Origin: Dimorphilus gyrociliatus | Taxonomy: Eukaryota > Animalia > Annelida | Length of the DNA: 45,833 bases | Assembly: GCA_904063045.1 (NCBI GenBank) | Contig: CAJFCJ010000066.1 | Span: 16,450 to 62,282 of the forward strand | Direction of reading: 5' to 3' | Part shown: positions 13,995 to 38,685 of the stretch, one piece after another | Layout: each line of letters starts with the position of its first letter | How positions within the stretch are numbered: the stretch's first letter is position 1 | Notes under the pieces: model-generated | Databases searched by the model: none | Seen by the model: the letters and a program-made list of their open reading frames with translations, nothing else | What the model was told of the DNA's origin: nothing | Program-made: the position numbers and the translations under genes

Positions 13995-14905
13995 NNNNNN
14001 NNNNNNNNNNNNNNNNNNNNNNNNNNNNNNNNNNNNNNNNNNNNNNNNNNNNNNNNNNNNNNNNNNNNNNNNNNNNNNNNNNNNNNNNNNNNNNNNNNNN
14101 NNNNNNNNNNNNNNNNNNNNNNNNNNNNNNNNNNNNNNNNNNNNNNNNNNNNNNNNNNNNNNNNNNNNNNNNNNNNNNNNNNNNNNNNNNNNNNNNNNNN
14201 NNNNNNNNNNNNNNNNNNNNNNNNNNNNNNNNNNNNNNNNNNNNNNNNNNNNNNNNNNNNNNNNNNNNNNNNNNNNNNNNNNNNNNNNNNNNNNNNNNNN
14301 NNNNNNNNNNNNNNNNNNNNNNNNNNNNNNNNNNNNNNNNNNNNNNNNNNNNNNNNNNNNNNNNNNNNNNNNNNNNNNNNNNNNNNNNNNNNNNNNNNNN
14401 NNNNNNNNNNNNNNNNNNNNNNNNNNNNNNNNNNNNNNNNNNNNNNNNNNNNNNNNNNNNNNNNNNNNNNNNNNNNNNNNNNNNNNNNNNNNNNNNNNNN
14501 NNNNNNNNNNNNNNNNNNNNNNNNNNNNNNNNNNNNNNNNNNNNNNNNNNNNNNNNNNNNNNNNNNNNNNNNNNNNNNNNNNNNNNNNNNNNNNNNNNNN
14601 NNNNNNNNNNNNNNNNNNNNNNNNNNNNNNNNNNNNNNNNNNNNNNNNNNNNNNNNNNNNNNNNNNNNNNNNNNNNNNNNNNNNNNNNNNNNNNNNNNNN
14701 NNNNNNNNNNNNNNNNNNNNNNNNNNNNNNNNNNNNNNNNNNNNNNNNNNNNNNNNNNNNNNNNNNNNNNNNNNNNNNNNNNNNNNNNNNNNNNNNNNNN
14801 NNNNNNNNNNNNNNNNNNNNNNNNNNNNNNNNNNNNNNNNNNNNNNNNNNNNNNNNNNNNNNNNNNNNNNNNNNNNNNNNNNNNNNNNNNNNNNNNNNNN
14901 NNNNN
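13995..14905. other. Assembly gap (911 N)
   Basis: Run of N. Confidence 1.
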
Positions 14906-17383: not shown

Positions 17384-18329
17384 ATGAAGGGTTCAACAAT
17401 TGCTATTTTCACCTTACTTTTTCTGAGTTTTGGTTAAATTTCCCTAAAATTAATATTTTCAACTAAAACTTATATGTTTTTTTCGTTTACAGTTAATGTG
17501 GTTCATTTACAAGGTTTTCGATTAGAGGTTGAAATTCCTGCTCATATTTTGGAAGATGTGGAAGATCGCATAATCATTTTTAGGCAAAATTCTGGAGCTC
17601 CAGTATGCAGGTTGTTTTTAAATATAAATACCTAAATTATGAATTTTATCAATCTAATTTGTTGGATAGCTTTTCACTTACAAAACCAGATGGAACTTTG
17701 GTGACACAAGGCACAAAAACTGTAAATAGTGCCTATGTACCTCACACATTGAGCGGCTCCCTGTTTTCAGGGATCACTGAGGATTATATATTGACTTACA
17801 CTTTCAATTGTCAGGGTGCAGGGGAGACAGTGGAATTTGAGATGCGATCATGTGTTAACTCAATTGAAAGTATGCAATATTATTGTTTATTTTTTAAATA
17901 TTACCAAATGTCTATAATATTTCTTTAGGTTTTGGTAGTTCTTCTCTACCTGCAACCTTTAATATCGGAATAGATGTTTCAGCTTTTCAAGCTCCACCAA
18001 TTACAGTTCTTATTAGAGGCAGTTCTGGTAGCGCTACTTGCACGTAATTATTTCAATAAAAGTTTTTGTATTTTTTAATATTCATCATCATTTACTTATC
18101 TCTTATTCTCTATTTCAGAGTAGCTGAACCAGATCCTTCTATAGCTTCCATTAATAATAGGGGACCAGAAACTTTGATACAAGGTGCAATGGAAATTGCA
18201 GTGACTAAAGATTGTTCGGTTGACTCTCTTTTCCTTGTTTCAACATGTACAAAGAACGGAAAAAACTTTGAAAATGAAATTCCTATATACTTTACACCTA
18301 GTACAATTTCACCATGGGCTATTCTGTAA
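17384..18329 (+). CDS. Uncharacterised secreted protein, 230 aa (exons 17384-17432, 17493-17610, 17670-17869, 17929-18043, 18119-18329)
   Basis: Signal peptide MKGSTIAIFTLLFLSF; four GT-AG introns give one continuous 693-nt frame ending at TAA. Confidence 0.85.
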
Positions 18330-18494: not shown

Positions 18495-18749
18495 GATAGC
18501 AAAACATAGCGATAATTTGAAAAGATTTTATCAGAAAAAAAAATTGACTGATAAAGTAAGAATAGTTTGACTATTAATAGACAGGAGTACTAGTAGTCAA
18601 ACTACTGAAAAACCAGATGTAAATTCCATTTTCAATACCAAAATTTTGTCTTGAAATTTCTCATTTGTGGACGTTTTCTGTCGCATCCGATAGCAAAACA
18701 TAGCGATAATTTGAAAAGATTTTATCAGAAAAAGACAATTGACTGATAA
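18495..18749 (+). repeat. 60/61-bp direct duplication (18495-18554, 18689-18749) flanking an 11-bp hairpin and a truncated MITE end
   Basis: GATAGCAAAACATAGCGATAATTTGAAAAGATTTTATCAGAAAAA..AATTGACTGATAA occurs twice; TAGTTTGACTA/TAGTCAAACTA at 18563-18573/18594-18604. Confidence 0.9.
18638..18688 (-). mobile_element. Truncated terminal 51 bp of the GGATGCGAC MITE
   Basis: Exact reverse complement of 27523-27573. Confidence 0.9.
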
Positions 18750-18995
18750 TGGTATCAAGAAGAAACTGGTATATAAAAAAGTACTCTTGGTATAAAATTT
18801 TCTACTTAATTAGTAGATTAAATACAAAATATTTTCAGGAAATTTTGCAATCAATGAATGATTCTACTCCAAGAAAAGTTGTTCTAGATTTTGAAAAATA
18901 CCGTTGGAAAGTAATCAAGCAAATTTCAGCAGATGTTAAAGTCCAGGGGTGTGGATATCATTGATCTCAAACAGTGATTAGAAAAATAAAAGAAT
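18749..18995 (+). mobile_element. Mutator-like transposase remnant (mirror copy at 27216-27462, minus)
   Basis: STPRKVVLDFEKYRWKVIKQISADVKVQGCGYH*SQTVIRKIKE; W codon changed to TGA. Confidence 0.85.
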
Positions 18996-19679
18996 AAATT
19001 TCAACACTCTTGTATAAATATATAAATAGTAAAATATAAGAAAACAGATTCTTGGCTATACAACAATATTTATTAAGAAGAAGGATGGATGGAAATATTC
19101 AACAAAAGCCTTGATCACAACATGATCACAAAAAGTTCATTATATGATTTAAATGCCGAATTGCAAAGGGAATCTGATTTGATATACATCTTGTACAACC
19201 TACCTATATATATTATTTTACTCTAAACTACTATAGGCCAACTACATATGCTGTCTAAAAACCAATTAGGAAAACACATTAACTCTTCGCCAAGTTATCA
19301 TTCAATTAGTTTTCATAAAAGACAAACATTTAGGAATATATCTATAAAAACTTTGAGATAAACTGTTACTAAAGGTAAACATGAATCAAATTATTCACTT
19401 AGTGAAAAGTGTAGTTCAGTTTGTTAACATAGCAAAAAATGAGTAATAAACATCATTTCTCCACCAAGACCAATGAATCTCCAATTGGTTGTAACAATGA
19501 AAGAGATGAAATTAATGGAGATTTTACGAAAGGGATATTCAAGAAGATTTTTTAAATTTGGTAAATACCTTAACCCTACATCCTATAATTTCATTTATAA
19601 AGTATTTATGGTGAAAACATTATAAATACAGTTTCCCTTTGCATTCAATTGAGCAGCAATTTAATGACAATTTTCATTT

Positions 19680-21191
19680 CTAAACTTGAACAATTATGAG
19701 TAGCAAAATAAACATTAAGTAGAAAAGACTATTGTCAAATTTCATTGTTTGTGATGCGCCATCTAAAAGGAAGAAAACATGAAATGTGCATTATGTAAAG
19801 CAAAGATGGTTTGTGTGTTTGAAAAAACTCACTAGCTGATAAAGATATGCTTTTGGTTAATTTATTCTTTGTACCACGAATCTCATTCCAGGCAGTACAT
19901 TTGTATTCATCAGTAGATTTTTCAACCTTCATTTTGGTGTTTGTTGATAGAATTTTATCGGATGATTTCTTGAAAAAAAGTAGGATAATTAGATTTTGTT
20001 GCAATTAGAAAAAAAGAAACATTTTTCTATTAATTACTTTTCTCCATTCGTATTTTGGTGGTGGATTTCCTACTGCTGAACAGGAAAGTTCTATTTCAGT
20101 CTTGCCAATTTCAGAACTAATATTTATGTCATTTACTTTATCTGCAGAAAACAGAATCTGTACTCAACAGTTCATTCAATCATTTAAAACTTACAAAGAA
20201 CTTGAAATTTTATAGGTTGACTTTTGAAGTGTAAAGAAGATTTTCCATCTGTTCGATGTAAACTCAGTTGACAATAGATATTATTATCATTCATTTCCTT
20301 AGAAGCACTAAGATTAGCTTTAAGAGTTATCAATCCATCAATGAAAATGACTTTACTAAATTTATAATGTATTTTTTTGTCATTTAAAAATATCTGAAAT
20401 TCAGAGTGTCCTGATCCCCAATAATTGAATTCGCACGAAAACATGAATTCTTCACCTTCTTCAGGAGAAAAATCTTTTGGATATTCTATGATTCTTGGAA
20501 TTGAATCTGTATTTTGTTTTTTGAGAAAAATCAAATTTAACCTTAGTGAAGATATTAGTTGGTAAAAGAAAAACTGTTACCATAAATGGCTATTCCTGTT
20601 TCTACAGAATCAGTACTAGTTCCATCAGCAATAGAAGCTTTAATTCGCATGCCATCAGTCTATTTTTATTTATCAATGTTTCAATTATTTAAGTTTAACA
20701 AGAAAAAAAACCCAGGGAAAGTATGAATCATTGATTACTCACTTTTTGTGATTTGTCTACAGTAAATGTATAACTGGAACTTTCTAAACCAGGTGTTGCT
20801 GTCCACCTATTCTGGAACTTTGATTCAAAGTTTGGAGTTTCATACATCAGTTCTGAAGTATTATTAAAAAGATTTTCCAATCGAATCTTTGCTTTATCTA
20901 ATTAGAAAACAAAGACACTGATAATAAATTGAATGAAATTCTAAAAATAGAATATTTACTAGTGAGAGTATAAGTTACACTTATCTTATCTCCAAGTTTA
21001 AAAGCTTTGTAAGTAGGAGAAGAGTAGAATTTGACTGAAATATTACCATTGCTTTTTTATTCATTAAATGAAACCAGTACTGAAATAGTTCAAATAAATA
21101 TAAAGATACCTGCAGAAGAAGAGATGACACTACTCAGTATACAAATTGTAGAGATGAGTATCCCACAGATGTTTGTCCTTATAACCACCAT
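19680..21191 (-). CDS. Predicted GPI-anchored three-Ig-domain protein, copy L, 341 aa, 8 exons (mirror of copy R)
   Basis: Signal peptide MVVIRTNICGILISTICILSSVISSSA; splice sites conserved with copy R; exons 5-8 appear identical to copy R. Confidence 0.9.
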
Positions 21192-22914
21192 ATTTTTATA
21201 TTATTGATTTTTTCTGGAATGTTGGAAAATTGATGAAATATTCTGTTCATTTTATGAAATCAATAGTTTGTTATTAAGGGTTTTGAGGTTGAAAATAATA
21301 GAAATGTAAATTTCTATTTGAATGAGGGCAAACTTTTATTGTTGATGAGTCAAAACATTGCTATTTTCATGTTAAAATCCCCCACTCATTTTTATTTCTA
21401 TGACACATATTCAATACAATTATTATGATGACTTTATCTTTTTGTTAAATCACCTATTTTTTATTTGTGTCTAGATATTCTGAGAAGAGAATCTAATGGA
21501 GCAAAATTTGTAAACTAGTAGAGGAAACTGGTAATTAAACTAATCAAAATATACTATATAGGCATATATAGTCGGTAAAAAATGTCCAAAAATTTATGAT
21601 TTCTCAACTTTAATTCTAACCTCTAACTATATATCTAGTATAGGGCAGTAGATATTCACTTTTCGTCAATTAGATATTAGTACACAAGTATATATAGATC
21701 AAATCAATAGAAAGCAGCTACAGTTTACCTGAGATATAATTTAAGATATCATCTGTTACTGTTTCATTTTTAATTCTTACCTTTACAATTGTTTAAGCTG
21801 TTATTCTTTTGATTTCTCGTCACACTTTCAAAATGCTACAAATAGCCTGTATTCCAAGATAAAGAAGGAATGACACAAATGTGCTGTATATAAAGGGTCA
21901 CATGTGTCATGCCCTCTGTAAAAATCAATAGGTGAATGCTCTAGCATTCATGTTTATTTTTAGTAAGAGTATATGGTCAAGTTTGCACTGTTGAATTTAA
22001 CATTATAGTACTGCTCTTGCTTGGCCAATGTTATAGCATTTTCTTCCTGTAGGTTTTTTAGAGGTAGATGTATAAGTTGCATCAAGTATTATAGTTCAAG
22101 CATCAAATATAACCAAAGTTGTACATTATTTAATAAATAAAGTTGAAAATTAATAGAACACAACGTTGCTTTCTTAATAGCTCATTTTGTAATAAATCAA
22201 TTAACAAACTAATAGCGATTATTACCATTCATGTGTAGGCATTAATAGGTTAAGTTTATGATTTTGTAATTGTTAGTGTACTAAGTAGTAATTTATATAC
22301 AAATATTTACACATAATACTCTCATATTCTTATATTTTGTGTTTTCTATTCTATAAAATCCATTTTAAAATAACAAATGAATTGTCTGTTAATGTTTTAT
22401 GGAAAAGTTGTGATATTTCTTCCGAAATCTCAGTTTAAATTGCCCATTCAATACGAAAATTGTTAAGGGGATGGCTATAAAATATGCTTTGTAATATCCT
22501 TGGTTGTGATTCATTGTACAGTGAACATAGTGTTTGTACAAGTGAAAATGGTGGAGAATATATGTTGTTTGTTTATCATGTCAATAATAGGACTATTCAC
22601 CTTTCACCTAGGTGTAATTTTATCCAATTATTATTAAATGGAATTGACAACTACTAGATTGTAAGTTAAAATATTGTTGATGCTATGATTTTGAATGAAT
22701 TGCTGTACTGTTTTTTCATTATGATTATGTCAACTAATGAGAAATACTGCAAAATTAAAGATTTATTCACTATGCTTAAAATGTTTTAGAACAAGTTATA
22801 CCTTTTACACTATAAAATAAATGTTTAATAAAGTATTACGTCATTGTTCGTTTGTTTATTTAGATATTTATATGATTGTCAAAGGTGCTCAATTTCTGAA
22901 ATTTTCATATTTGT

Positions 22915-22937
22915 ATATAATATATATATATATATGT
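22915..22937. repeat. (AT)n microsatellite
   Basis: Direct reading; limits approximate. Confidence 0.8.
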
Positions 22938-23930
22938 AGTCGATGAATGAGTAGCGAGTGTAGGTTAAAGCTATTTCCACCAACTTTACTTAATATACAC
23001 ATTAAAGATTTAAGGTATATACTAGTAAATATAGCAGTAATAATAAGTAATAACGTGTCGAAATAATAAAGGGTAATTAAATACAGTTAGGTTTAAAAAT
23101 ATATGTAACGTAAAGTAATTATAAAATAACGTAAAGGGAATTTGGCTCACTGCCAAATTTAGGCGATGTACCCATCGACTACATATATATAGATTATCCT
23201 CCAACTGCTCAACTGAAATTGTCCTTAAAAAAGAGACAGGGATCCATACTTGACTTTTATAGAGAGTGCAATAAAATGGGATTAGATGAGATAGACGAAA
23301 CGCTAAATTATACTTTCAAAATTTGTATCTATATAAAAGAAGATTTATGGTGTTTTGGATTATCATCAAACTAATTGAAAATCTCTACTAGAATGCTGTT
23401 TTACTTATAAATATTCAATATTTATGAAATTTTGTTAACCATCTCCTTCACTATTCAATACATGTTCCGATTTAATTGCATCTACATATTTAAATATATT
23501 TTTTTTATGCTGTTTTGGATTAATTGGCATAATACTCAATATTATTTTACCCTTATCTTTCATATTGCTGTTATGAAGAAGATGGATAAGATCATTTATA
23601 TTATGATGTCATTCTCTGATCTTTTTGTCAATTTATTGGAAGTATAATATAAGAAACAACTTCCATCTTAACTTGTTGCCATGACTATAATTTTTGTTTT
23701 AAATGTGAATTGAATATTTAACATGATATTTTTTACTGTAAATCTCATTTTTGATTATTTTCTTTATTTACTAAATAAACAGATAAGGCCACAGTTAACT
23801 TCCCTGGAAACCCAAAACAAATGAAACAAAGTTGTAGTTTTCCTCAACATCAACTGATGCATAAGAACAACCACCATAAATCCTATTAAATCAAGATGAA
23901 GGGACTCTTCTTCACCCAGAAGGAGGAAGT

Positions 23931-26900
23931 TGTACAACTTTGGTCATATTTGATGCTTGAACTATATTACATGATACAACTTATACATCTAACTCTGAAA
24001 ACCTACACAAGAAAATGCTACATCATTGGCCAAACACAGGGCTGATTAGTCAGCTTGAAGGCTTATCTTTAATTACCAGGTCATCTTCCTGCTTGCTTCA
24101 GTATTATTATTTTGAATAAACTGTTTTAATTTAAACAATTGTTTAAAAGGTTCTAGTAGAACCACTATTGTTGTAACTTGCATAAGCATAAATAATTTTA
24201 AATTCAACAGCATAAAACTTTTGCATATACTCTCACTAAAAATAAACATGAATGCTAGAGCATTCACCTATTGACTTTTACAGAGGGCGTGATCACCACT
24301 AACACGTGACCCTTTATATACAGCGCATTTCTATGATTCACTCTTTATATTGGAATAAAGTATATTTGTAGCATTTTGAAAGTGTGACGAGACATCGAAA
24401 GAATAACAGCTTGAATAATAGTAAAGGTAAGAATTAAAAATGAAACAGTAATGGATGATATCTTAAATTATATCTCAGGTAAACTGTACCTGCTTTTAAT
24501 TGATTTGATCTATATATACCTGTGTACTAATATACTGTATAATTGACAAAAAGTGAATATCTACTGCCCTATACTAGATATATAGTTAGAGGTTGGAATT
24601 AAAGTTGAGAAATCATAAATTTGTGGACATTTTTTACCGACTATACACCCCTATATAGTATATTTCGATTAGTTTAATTACCAGTTTTCTCTACTAGTTT
24701 ACAAATTTTGCTCTGTTAGATTCTCTTCTCAGAATATCTAAGATGTAAAAAAAAAATAGAAGATTTAACAAAAAGATAAAGTTGTGAAAATAATTGTATT
24801 GAATATGTGTCATAGAAAAAAATGAGTAGGGGATTTTAACATGAAAATAAGAATGTTTTGACTCATCAACAATAAAAGTTTGCCCTCATTCAATTAGAAA
24901 TTAACATTTCTATAATTTTCAACCTGAAAACTGATAATAACAAACTATTGATTTCATAAAATGAACAGAATATTTAATCAATTTTTCATCATTCCAGGAA
25001 AAATCCATAATATAAAAATATGGCGGTTATAAAGAGAAATATCTGTGCGATACTCATCTCTACAATTTGTATACTGAGTAGTATCATCTCTTCTTCAGCA
25101 GGTATCTTTATATTTATTTGAATTATTTCAGTATGGGCTTCATTGAATGAATAAAAAAGCAACGGTAATATTTCAGTTAAATTCCACTCTTCTCCTACTT
25201 ACGAAGCTTTTAAACTTGGAGATAAGATAACTGTAACTTATAGTCTCACTGGTAAATATTCTATTTTTAGAATTTCATTCAATTTGTTATCAGTGTCTTT
25301 GTTTTCTAATTAGATAAAGCAAAACTTCGATTGGAAAATCTTTTTAATAATACTTCAGAACTGATGTATGAAACTCCAAACTTTGAATCAAAGTTCCAGA
25401 ATAGGTGGAAAGCCACACCTGGTGTAGAAAGTTCCAGTTATACATTTACTGTAGACAAATCAAAAAAAGTGAGTAATCAATGATTCATACTTTCCCTGGG
25501 TTTTTTTTTCTGTTAAATTTAAATAATTGAAACATTGATAAATAAAAATAGACTGATGGCATGCGAATTAAGGCTTCTATTGCTGATGGAACTAGTACTG
25601 ATTCTGTAGAAACAGGAATAGCCATTTATGGTAACAGTTTTTCTTTTACCAACTAATATCTTCACTAAGGTTAAATTTGATTTTTCTCAAAAAACAAAAT
25701 ACAGATTCAATTCCAAGAATCATAGAATATCCAAAAGATTTTTCTCCTGAAGAAGGTGAAGAATTCATGTTTTCGTGCGAATTCAATTATTGGGGATCAG
25801 GACACTCTGAATTTCAGATATTTTTAAATGACAAAAAAATACATTATAAATTTAGTAAAGTCATTTTCATTGATGGATTGATAACTCTTAAAGCTAATCT
25901 TAGTGCTTCTAAGGAAATGAATGATAATAATATCTATTGTCAACTGAGTTTACATCGAACAGATGGAAAATCTTCTTTACACTTCAAAAGTCAACCTATA
26001 AAATTTCAAGTTCTTTGTAAGTTTTAAATGATTGAATGAACTGTTGAGTACAGATTCTGTTTTCTGCAGATAAAGTAAATGACATAAATATTAGTTCTGA
26101 AATTGGCAAGACTGAAATAGAACTTTCCTGTTCAGCAGTAGGAAATCCACCACCAAAATACGAATGGAGAAAAGTAATTAATAGAAAAATGTTTCTTTTT
26201 TTCTAATTGCAACAAAATCTAATTATCCTACTTTTTTTCAAGAAATCATCCGATAAAATTCTATCAACAAACACCAAAATGAAGGTTGAAAAATCTACTG
26301 ATGAATACAAATGTACTGCCTGGAATGAGATTCGTGGTACAAAGAATAAATTAACCAAAAGCATATCTTTATCAGCTAGTGAGTTTTTTCAAACACACAA
26401 ACCATCTTTGCTTTACATAATGCACATTTCATGTTTTCTTCCTTTTAGATGGCGCATCACAAACAATGAAATTTGACAATAGTCTTTTCTACTTAATGTT
26501 TATTTTGCTACTCATAATTGTTCAAGTTTAGAAATGAAAATTGTCATTAAATTGCTGCTCAATTGAATGCAAAGGGAAACTGTATTTATAATGTTTTCAC
26601 CATAAATACTTTATAAATGAAATTATAGGATGTAGGGTTAAGGTATTTACCAAATTTAAAAAATCTTCTTGAATATCCCTTTCGTAAAATCTCCATTAAT
26701 TTCATCTCTTTCATTGTTACAACCAATTGGAGATTCATTGGTCTTGGTGGAGAAATGATGTTTATTACTCATTTTTTGCTATGTTAACAAACTGAACTAC
26801 ACTTTTCACTAAGTGAATAATTTGATTCATGTTTACCTTTAGTAACAGTTTATCTCAAAGTTTTTATAGATATATTCCTAAATGTTTGTCTTTTATGAAA

Positions 26901-27573
26901 ACTAATTGAATGATAACTTGGCGAAGAGTTAATGTGTTTTCCTAATTGGTTTTTAGACAGCATATGTAGTTGGCCTATAGTAGTTTAGAGTAAAATAATA
27001 TATATAGGTAGGTTGTACAAGATGTATATCAAATCAGATTCCCTTTGCAATTCGGCATTTAAATCATATAATGAACTTTTTGTGATCATGTTGTGATCAA
27101 GGCTTTTGTTGAATATTTCCATCCATCCTTCTTCTTAATAAATATTGTTGTATAGCCAAGAATCTGTTTTCTTATATTTTACTATTTATATATTTATACA
27201 AGAGTGTTGAAATTTATTCTTTTATTTTTCTAATCACTGTTTGAGATCAATGATATCCACACCCCTGGACTTTAACATCTGCTGAAATTTGCTTGATTAC
27301 TTTCCAACGGTATTTTTCAAAATCTAGAACAACTTTTCTTGGAGTAGAATCATTCATTGATTGCAAAATTTCCTGAAAATATTTTGTATTTAATCTACTA
27401 ATTAAGTAGAAAATTTTATACCAAGAGTACTTTTTTATATACCAGTTTCTTCTTGATACCATTATCAGTCAATTGTCTTTTTCTGATAAAATCTTTTCAA
27501 ATTATCGCTATGTTTTGCTATCGGATGCGACAGAAAACGTCCACAAATGAGAAATTTCAAGACAAAATTTTGG
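23931..27573 (+). repeat. Right arm of large palindrome (partner 18638-22125)
   Basis: As for the left arm; carries an extra segment of about 150 bp near 24040-24190. Confidence 0.97.
25020..26531 (+). CDS. Predicted GPI-anchored three-Ig-domain protein, copy R, 341 aa (exons 25020-25101, 25177-25251, 25314-25468, 25552-25630, 25705-26016, 26070-26173, 26243-26378, 26449-26531)
   Basis: Seven GT-AG introns give a 1026-nt frame; D2 FSCEFNYWG..IYCQL, D3 LSCSAVGNPPPKYEW..YKCTAWN; ends in hydrophobic LFYLMFILLLIIVQV with no cytoplasmic tail. Confidence 0.92.
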
Positions 27574-27729
27574 ATTGAGAAATGGTTGGGCAGAAGAAAA
27601 CAGTAACTGATTTGTACTTAAGAGGGTCTCCCCTAAGGGTTAGGGATAATGGAAAAGATTAGGTACAGCTAAGGGCTGGGTTACGGTTAGGGTAAAAGCA
27701 CTCATTTATGGACGTTTTCTGTCGCATCC
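27523..27729. mobile_element. Complete 207-bp MITE, 29-bp TIR (1 mismatch), 3-bp ATC flanking duplication
   Basis: GGATGCGACAGAAAACGTCCACAAATGAG ... CTCATTTATGGACGTTTTCTGTCGCATCC; ATC at 27520-27522 and 27730-27732. Confidence 0.9.
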
Positions 27730-38495: not shown

Positions 38496-38685
38496 TCCAC
38501 AAATGAGAAATTTTAGGACAAAAATTTGGATTGAGAAATGGTTAGGCAAAAGATAACAGCAACTGATTTGTACTTAGGAGGGTCTCTTCTAAGGGTTAGG
38601 GGTAATGGAAAAGGTTAGGTACAGCCAAGGGCTGGGTTAGGGTTAGGATTAAAGCACTGATTTGTGGACGTTTTCTGTCGCATCC
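38496..38685. mobile_element. Diverged copy of the GGATGCGAC MITE, left terminus truncated
   Basis: Colinear with 27540-27729. Confidence 0.88.

Follow-up and report, generated by a model that had tools for sequence, protein, structure and literature searches.

How two neighbouring copies of a gene can be identical to the letter over their 3' parts, introns and dead repeat sequence included, and then begin to differ by several percent from a point within one exon is the question raised by an inverted repeat in the genome of the annelid Dimorphilus gyrociliatus. The repeat lies in a stretch of 45,833 nucleotides (nt), here called the window and numbered from its first letter, which belongs to the 124-kb scaffold CAJFCJ010000066.1 of assembly GCA_904063045.1; its two arms carry a pair of genes, head to head, for an immunoglobulin (Ig)-like protein. 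One possible answer is that the arms have exchanged sequence by gene conversion; another is that the left gene, as assembled, has been put together from two different genes. We favour the second, at a probability of about 0.5, and rank it above a real conversion tract. The locus itself is a young multi-copy cluster of a gene restricted to this species. The window is AT-rich (G+C about 29%), and a run of 911 Ns at 13995-14905 marks a scaffolding gap within it, the assembly being a scaffolded draft.

The left arm (18638-22125) holds the left gene with its 3' flank and promoter region, between a repeat remnant and an inner repeat fragment, and is colinear with the reverse complement of the right arm (23931-27573), which carries the right gene. 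Across 18638-21392 (2755 nt) the two are mirrored without a single indel, corresponding positions always adding up to 46211. In the outer part, 18638-20638 is the exact reverse complement of 25573-27573, with 0 mismatches in 2001 nt; this block, the outer 57% of the 3.5-kb arm, takes in the repeat remnant, the 3' untranslated region (UTR), exons 8-5, introns 4-7 and part of exon 4. The earliest mismatch, at 20639/25572, lies within exon 4 (20581-20659), and from there inward to 22006, 96 of the 1364 aligned nt differ (7.0%), the identity in successive windows of 200 nt being 96, 95.5, 91, 93, 92.5, 93.5 and 88%. At 7% divergence, a mismatch-free run of 2001 nt would be expected with a probability of about 1e-63. 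A sequence-only reading of this DNA had described the exact mirroring of the arms, an outer 2001 bp that appeared free of mismatches up to 20639/25572, and divergence increasing from there inward; direct comparison of the assembly sequence and sliding windows (from 96% down to 88% identity) agree with all of this. Its argument that identical introns and dead repeat sequence require recent copying or conversion is also sound: since a block of 2 kb or more, made up of coding sequence, introns and dead repeat, is present twice at 100% identity, very recent copying or conversion is needed, under either of the assignments of outer to inner sequence discussed below. Homology between the arms ends at 18638/27573 on the outside and at 22125/23931 on the inside, with the copies in differing contexts on both sides.

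Each arm contains an intact gene of 341 amino acids (aa) in eight exons, the two being transcribed divergently. The left coding sequence occupies 19680-21191 on the minus strand (exons 21191-21110, 21034-20960, 20897-20743, 20659-20581, 20506-20195, 20141-20038, 19968-19833 and 19762-19680), and that of the right gene 25020-26531 on the plus strand (exons 25020-25101, 25177-25251, 25314-25468, 25552-25630, 25705-26016, 26070-26173, 26243-26378 and 26449-26531). The three annotated models at the locus, DgyrCDS14704 and DgyrCDS14705 on the left and DgyrCDS14706 on the right, are all truncated: DgyrCDS14704 begins at Met70 and thus has neither the signal peptide nor the start of domain 1, and the other two read into intron 6 and end at 210 aa. 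It is the 341-aa product that is backed by the RNA. Sequencing reads were used here as Logan contigs of 31-mers, from the DNA run X1 and the RNA runs X2, X3 and X4, and the perfect identity of the arms was compared with these contigs only, rather than with raw reads; no such contig spans the repeats at 18525-18703 or 22906-23161. All seven coding introns have been confirmed by spliced contigs from the three RNA runs, and two further joints in the 5' UTR, 21212 to 21780 and 21212 to 21728 on the scale of the left arm and thus 52 nt apart, are found in RNA contigs, their splice sites having been read from the sequence. On the right, the non-coding first exon runs from about 24360 to 24478 on the plus strand (the start is approximate), with alternative donors after 24426 and 24478 and an acceptor at 24998, and is preceded by a TATA-like TTTATATAC at about 24312-24320. 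At the sites where the arms differ, RNA contigs of X2, X3 and X4 carry the right-type letters; X2 and X3 contain the right type only, and in X4, the one run with the left-type joint 20897 to 20960, the left type reaches about half the level of the right type. The right type is thus the main expressed form, and the left type is weakly expressed.

The DNA run supports the existence of more than one copy, and of more than the assembly contains. Depth in X1 is 93 in the left flank and 67-102 in the spacer, repeats excepted (67-76 in the spacer contigs compared with the block), and rises to 189-210 in the reference-type 3' part (189 for a contig of 1042 nt, 209.5 for one of 231 nt); this independent DNA run thus has the identical block at about twice flank depth, which means two copies of it or more. 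At the sites that differ between the arms, right-type 5' contigs have depths of 185-264 and left-type contigs of 79-136. Another X1 contig, with a depth of 103 out of a total of 308, lies inside the supposedly identical zone and carries an additional T after 20516 and an additional C after 20534, so that abundance classes in a ratio of 2:1 are found on both sides of 20639. The same variant class is seen in the RNA of X4, where exon 5 is present in a reference form at 56.5 and a variant at 29.3, which differs at 10 of 193 nt (the counts for the exon-5 contigs being 5 and 10), next to 5' exons at 55 for the right type and 24.8 for the left. X2 contains a single transcript of 1782 nt, right-type joined to reference, with neither the left type nor the variant seen. 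Both 5' types, then, exist in DNA and RNA. Heterozygosity across the genome is as low as 0.16%, and 6.4% of the k-mers in the reads are absent from the assembly. Because of that low heterozygosity, and because the arms lie in different contexts and so are not simple alleles, the depth of flank and spacer is most likely that of single-copy sequence; with the arms together at about three times flank depth, the reads most likely hold about three gene-equivalents, against two in the assembly. Of the reading first proposed for the block, recent copying stands, and it is the mosaic of homogenised and divergent parts that the third sequence class puts in doubt. The variant class is not the nearest paralogue, DgyrCDS14818/9: with 73% DNA identity and 68% protein identity, that gene is too distant. 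Read-derived variant proteins were also sought in a large protein collection with a view to phasing, and only the NCBI models of D. gyrociliatus were present there.

These abundances would be explained if the genome held a right-type gene twice, in 100%-identical copies next to the left and the right flank respectively, together with one older left-type gene that is 5-7% diverged over its whole length. The second right-type copy would have arisen by a very recent inverted duplication, its outer breakpoint cutting the repeat at 18638. In the assembled left gene, then, the outer 2 kb would stem from this second right-type copy and the remainder, on the inner side, from the left-type gene, both having been joined at 20639 by a pipeline that merged similar sequences as alleles or as tandem errors. 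No real gene would have a homogenised stalk and a divergent tip, the perfect identity would reflect recent copying of a whole gene, and the sharp boundary at 20639 may be the join of a hybrid instead of the edge of a conversion tract. We prefer this explanation because the variant and the left type are equally abundant in DNA (103 against about 110) and in RNA (29 against 25), are both present in two runs and both absent from X2, and because the divergence of the variant (5-7%) equals that between the left and right types (5.1% in exons 1-4); otherwise, moreover, one would have to assume silence of a copy that shares its promoter region, unchanged, with the highly expressed right gene. In favour of a hybrid we also count a second outer junction in X1 that the assembly lacks (described below), the low heterozygosity, the read k-mers missing from the assembly, and the excess of left-derived over right-derived changes. 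The assembly was made, according to the genome paper, from pooled females with PBcR, Quiver, Pilon and HaploMerger2, followed by SSPACE-LongRead, and HaploMerger2 not only merges alleles but also links scaffolds that overlap and deletes "tandem errors" (PMC6668484); with pooled females and such a step, a hybrid is plausible.

Several considerations weigh against a hybrid. Contigs of 31-mers cannot phase the variant sites (up to 20534) with the left/right sites (from 20639 on), which are 105 nt apart, and the linkage of variant and left type is inferred from abundances in three runs. The word depths are contig means and noisy, and as the placement of contigs allowed a likeness of 90%, part of the depth may derive from other sequences. 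PacBio reads, at more than 5 kb, ought to be long enough to resolve an arm of 3.5 kb that has unique flank and spacer as anchors, and polishing with Quiver would normally restore true differences. Finally, the same numbers fit three units of another composition, namely A (reference 3' part with left 5' part), B (variant 3' with right 5') and C (reference 3' with right 5'), in which case the assembly is correct and one copy is missing from it.

That last arrangement would be the result of a single natural event, a recent gene conversion from one arm to the other or else a switch of template during copying, which homogenised the outer 2 kb and whose inner edge lies between 20535 and 20638; the third class in the reads would be a lost copy with a variant 3' part and a right-type 5' part. 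This account is possible, and less probable than a hybrid. It is consistent with the exact, indel-free mirroring over 2755 nt and the abrupt change in divergence, with the identical block being at twice the depth of a left-type 5' part that is single like flank and spacer, and with an assembly built on long PacBio reads (> 5 kb). The left outer junction, too, is a complex scar inside a repeat that looks biological. What makes the account difficult is the third copy, which would have to be silent in X2, in which expression of the right gene is very high, in spite of having right-type promoter-proximal sequence at 100% identity; the three genes would have to be expressed near-equally in X4; and the whole of that copy, along with both its junctions, would have to be missing from the assembly.

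The scar lies at the outer edge of the left arm. The outermost 46 nt of the arms (18638-18683, and 27528-27573 on the right) belong to a very high-copy repeat, with a depth of about 25,800 in a consensus with loose ends. On the right this repeat runs on past 27573, where 28 of the 30 letters in the reverse complement of 27574-27603 agree with the consensus of many other copies; for 18608-18637 on the left the figure is 8 of 30, and the repeat is cut off at 18638. Since it is truncated there, with unrelated sequence beyond, the left outer edge is a rearrangement breakpoint inside the repeat. The junction segment beyond it (18495-18637) is made up of a second copy, 45-61 nt long, of the arm sequence at 18689-18749, sitting 194 nt farther out, followed by 83 nt of unique sequence that abut the truncated repeat. 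An X1 contig with a depth of 119, as for single-copy sequence, shows yet another configuration, absent from the assembly, in which 18369 is joined to 18871 by a 7-nt filler, AAATTTA, skipping 501 nt that include the outer edge of the palindrome; the flank 29-mer of this junction is unique in the window. It belongs either to another haplotype or to a third gene copy, of which it would be the outer junction.

A different explanation altogether is that the pooled culture contained divergent haplotypes, the left and right types, at one or two positions, the palindrome having come wholly or partly from phased haplotypes that were wrongly scaffolded. The palindromes in the first assembly of Adineta vaga (AV13) were artefacts of just this kind (PMC8494291), and here as well the DNA is from pooled females, haplotypes have been merged, the scaffold is a small one of 124 kb with an N gap, and the unequal 2:1 abundances could be haplotype frequencies. 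Alleles would be expected to share their surroundings, and here the homology stops on both sides, at 18638/27573 and 22125/23931; the depth of the left type is also that of flank and spacer, heterozygosity is low genome-wide, and the arms together reach about three times flank depth. We therefore consider this explanation unlikely. A missed-adapter or fold-back artefact of PacBio sequencing has been ruled out by the 1.8-kb unique spacer and by the presence of both diverged inner arms in independent Illumina and RNA contigs, and chimeras of whole-genome amplification by the plain DNA extraction described in the genome paper. With the differing contexts and both 5' types real, the head-to-head pair of the gene is itself probably real, and only the mosaic is suspect.

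The innermost 71 nt of each arm (22055-22125 and 23931-24001) are also a high-copy repeat, at a depth of about 3,500 where the flank has about 90. Between the arms, the spacer (22126-23930) has two halves without homology to each other and contains no open reading frame (ORF) above 71 aa and no Rfam match; the rest of the window has no Rfam match either. High-copy repeats in mid-spacer (about 22800-23200) reach a depth of about 4,800, and short-read contigs cannot link the spacer halves across them. The search for a classification of the repeat remnants gave only a sub-threshold match to a MULE transposase (E = 0.07), and nothing for the other ORF fragments. Beyond the left edge of the palindrome is an annotated gene of 230 aa (17384-18329, plus strand); its RNA depth is low, its intron 18044-18118 is confirmed, and the precomputed gene table lists no Pfam family for it.

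The product of the gene is predicted to be a secreted, glycosylphosphatidylinositol (GPI)-type cell-surface protein, with three Ig-like domains as judged from sequence and from a structural model, and with the general build of small adhesion molecules. A predicted N-terminal signal sequence, with a hydrophobic core, is followed by a cysteine-free domain 1 and by two further domains with cysteine pairs at 155/209 and 255/293; three N-glycosylation sites are common to both copies. At the C-terminus the small residues SANGAS precede a hydrophobic tail of 16 residues extending to the last residue, which would be of GPI type on a heuristic reading. The intact frames and the spliced contigs uphold the gene model and the head-to-head placement that had been proposed for the locus, and the C-terminus would fit the GPI-type tail of that proposal. 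Domain 3 scores above the Pfam cut-offs for Ig_2 (36.0 bits), Ig_3 (35.5 bits) and I-set (29.1 bits), and in the AlphaFold model of a full-length paralogue, P0007, domains 2 and 3 are confident Ig folds with pLDDT values of 85-95. Domain 1 has no Pfam match, and the paralogue model is of low confidence there (pLDDT below 50, residues 51-104), so that no fold is claimed for it.

Foldseek searches with the P0007 model identified three-Ig adhesion molecules, with E values of 5e-8 to 2e-10 and TM scores of up to 0.47 (CADM1). The fold of this model resembles those of the CADM/nectin-like proteins, the GPI-anchored IgLONs, MAG and the siglecs, and ICAM and VCAM; with the IgLONs the protein would share, in addition, the succession of a predicted signal peptide, three tandem domains and a GPI-type tail. 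The structural matches have only 10-18% sequence identity, however, and the cysteine-free domain 1, with its lack of a Pfam match and its low model confidence, sets the protein apart from the three-Ig adhesion families. No evidence of orthology to IgLON- or CADM-like families was obtained, the search with domain 2 having found D. gyrociliatus proteins only.

In the assembly the two proteins are identical from residue 104 to residue 341, tail included, and differ at 14 residues, five in the signal peptide and nine in the mature domain 1. It had been suggested that they are receptors with a shared stalk and different tips, and that the locus might serve paired recognition or be allorecognition-like, which would mean that a constant stalk has been kept while diversifying selection has driven the N-terminal domain apart. 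That the assembled genes differ only in signal peptide and domain 1, and that the family is species-restricted and multi-copy, would suit such a function. The tips are hardly different, the nine mature changes being mostly conservative (Y/H, K/E, S/T, T/S, N/D, I/L, T/K, L/V and Q/K), with the N-glycosylation sites unchanged. The ratio dN/dS is 0.66 for exons 1-4 and 0.62 for the mature domain 1, not significantly different from 1 (Fisher p = 0.41), and introns 1-3, at 4.5%, are about as diverged between left and right as exons 1-4, the upstream region differing by 7.5-8.4%. With the nearest paralogue as outgroup, 17 changes are left-derived and 6 right-derived, concentrated, that is, on the weakly expressed copy. 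As dN/dS does not differ significantly from 1, exons diverge like introns, changes pile up on the left and left RNA is low, the left copy looks like a weakly expressed duplicate under relaxed constraint. The identical C-termini leave no room for a logic of paired, opposing signals, and the other four loci of the family are single genes. The proposal of different tips is not supported, and we regard a functional recognition locus as very improbable.

A search with domain 2 among 1.8 billion representatives returned four clusters only, all of them from D. gyrociliatus. The relatives are DgyrCDS14818/9 (68% protein identity), DgyrCDS14401, DgyrCDS9217 and DgyrCDS4140, making a species-restricted family of about five loci. 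The palindrome is not a trait of the family, as the four other loci hold single genes. In the paralogue DgyrCDS14401 (locus L004, 9735-13910) the Ig domains are followed by a C-terminal F5/8 type C (discoidin) domain in place of the GPI-type tail; its annotated N-terminus (protein P0002) resembles a repeat at window positions 27582-27656 and 38538-38615 and, from that likeness, is probably repeat-derived. The 46-nt end of the high-copy repeat (about 250 times flank depth) also adjoins two of the paralogues, at 12050-12095 of L002 and 9683-9724 of L004. The paralogue loci L002, L003, L004 and L005 are all within about 65 kb of scaffold ends, L005 within 1 kb, which suggests that the family is located in repeat-rich regions that are hard to assemble.

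Inverted gene pairs with homogenised arms are known from other animals. In the ampliconic palindromes of the human and primate Y and X chromosomes, arms of tens of kb to Mb are kept near-identical through arm-to-arm gene conversion. The D. gyrociliatus locus resembles them in having gene-bearing inverted arms around a unique spacer and in the identity of non-coding arm sequence, which selection cannot explain; there, however, the whole arm is near-identical, whereas here the arms are of 3.5 kb, only their outer 57% is identical, and the reads suggest three copies. Closer in size are Hsp70Aa and Hsp70Ab of Drosophila, a small inverted gene pair showing concerted evolution, also head-to-head duplicates a few kb apart with a homogenised tract and diverged flanks; the identical tract here differs in that it covers the 3' flank and dead repeat as well and ends inside the coding region. 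With the artefactual palindromes of A. vaga AV13 (PMC8494291) and the hybrids made in steps B and D of HaploMerger2 (PMC6668484) the locus shares the use of HaploMerger2 on a pooled sample, and the presence in the reads of a class that is absent from the assembly exactly where identity is perfect. It differs from them in the surroundings of its arms, which are unlike on the outer as well as the inner side, and in having two 5' types that both exist and are expressed.

The locus is of a known kind, a gene duplicated in inverted orientation not long ago whose copies may have evolved in concert, and its most striking feature, the mosaic, could well be an artefact. For the present its main value is cautionary: the D. 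gyrociliatus reference probably lacks one copy of the gene and may carry a hybrid gene model. Should the mosaic be true, the locus would be a compact and tractable example of arm-to-arm conversion, with the edge of the tract mapped inside a gene, in an inbreeding annelid that is cultured in the laboratory. It would then mean, though we find this doubtful, that conversion between the arms maintains partial identity in short palindromes that carry genes, in a genome that is among the smallest of annelids, with a tract here ending in exon 4 and products that share domains 2-3 and the anchor, domain 1 being free to drift. Nothing points to a recognition system. The family itself, with three Ig-like domains and about five loci in this one species, may be of interest to students of lineage-specific surface proteins.

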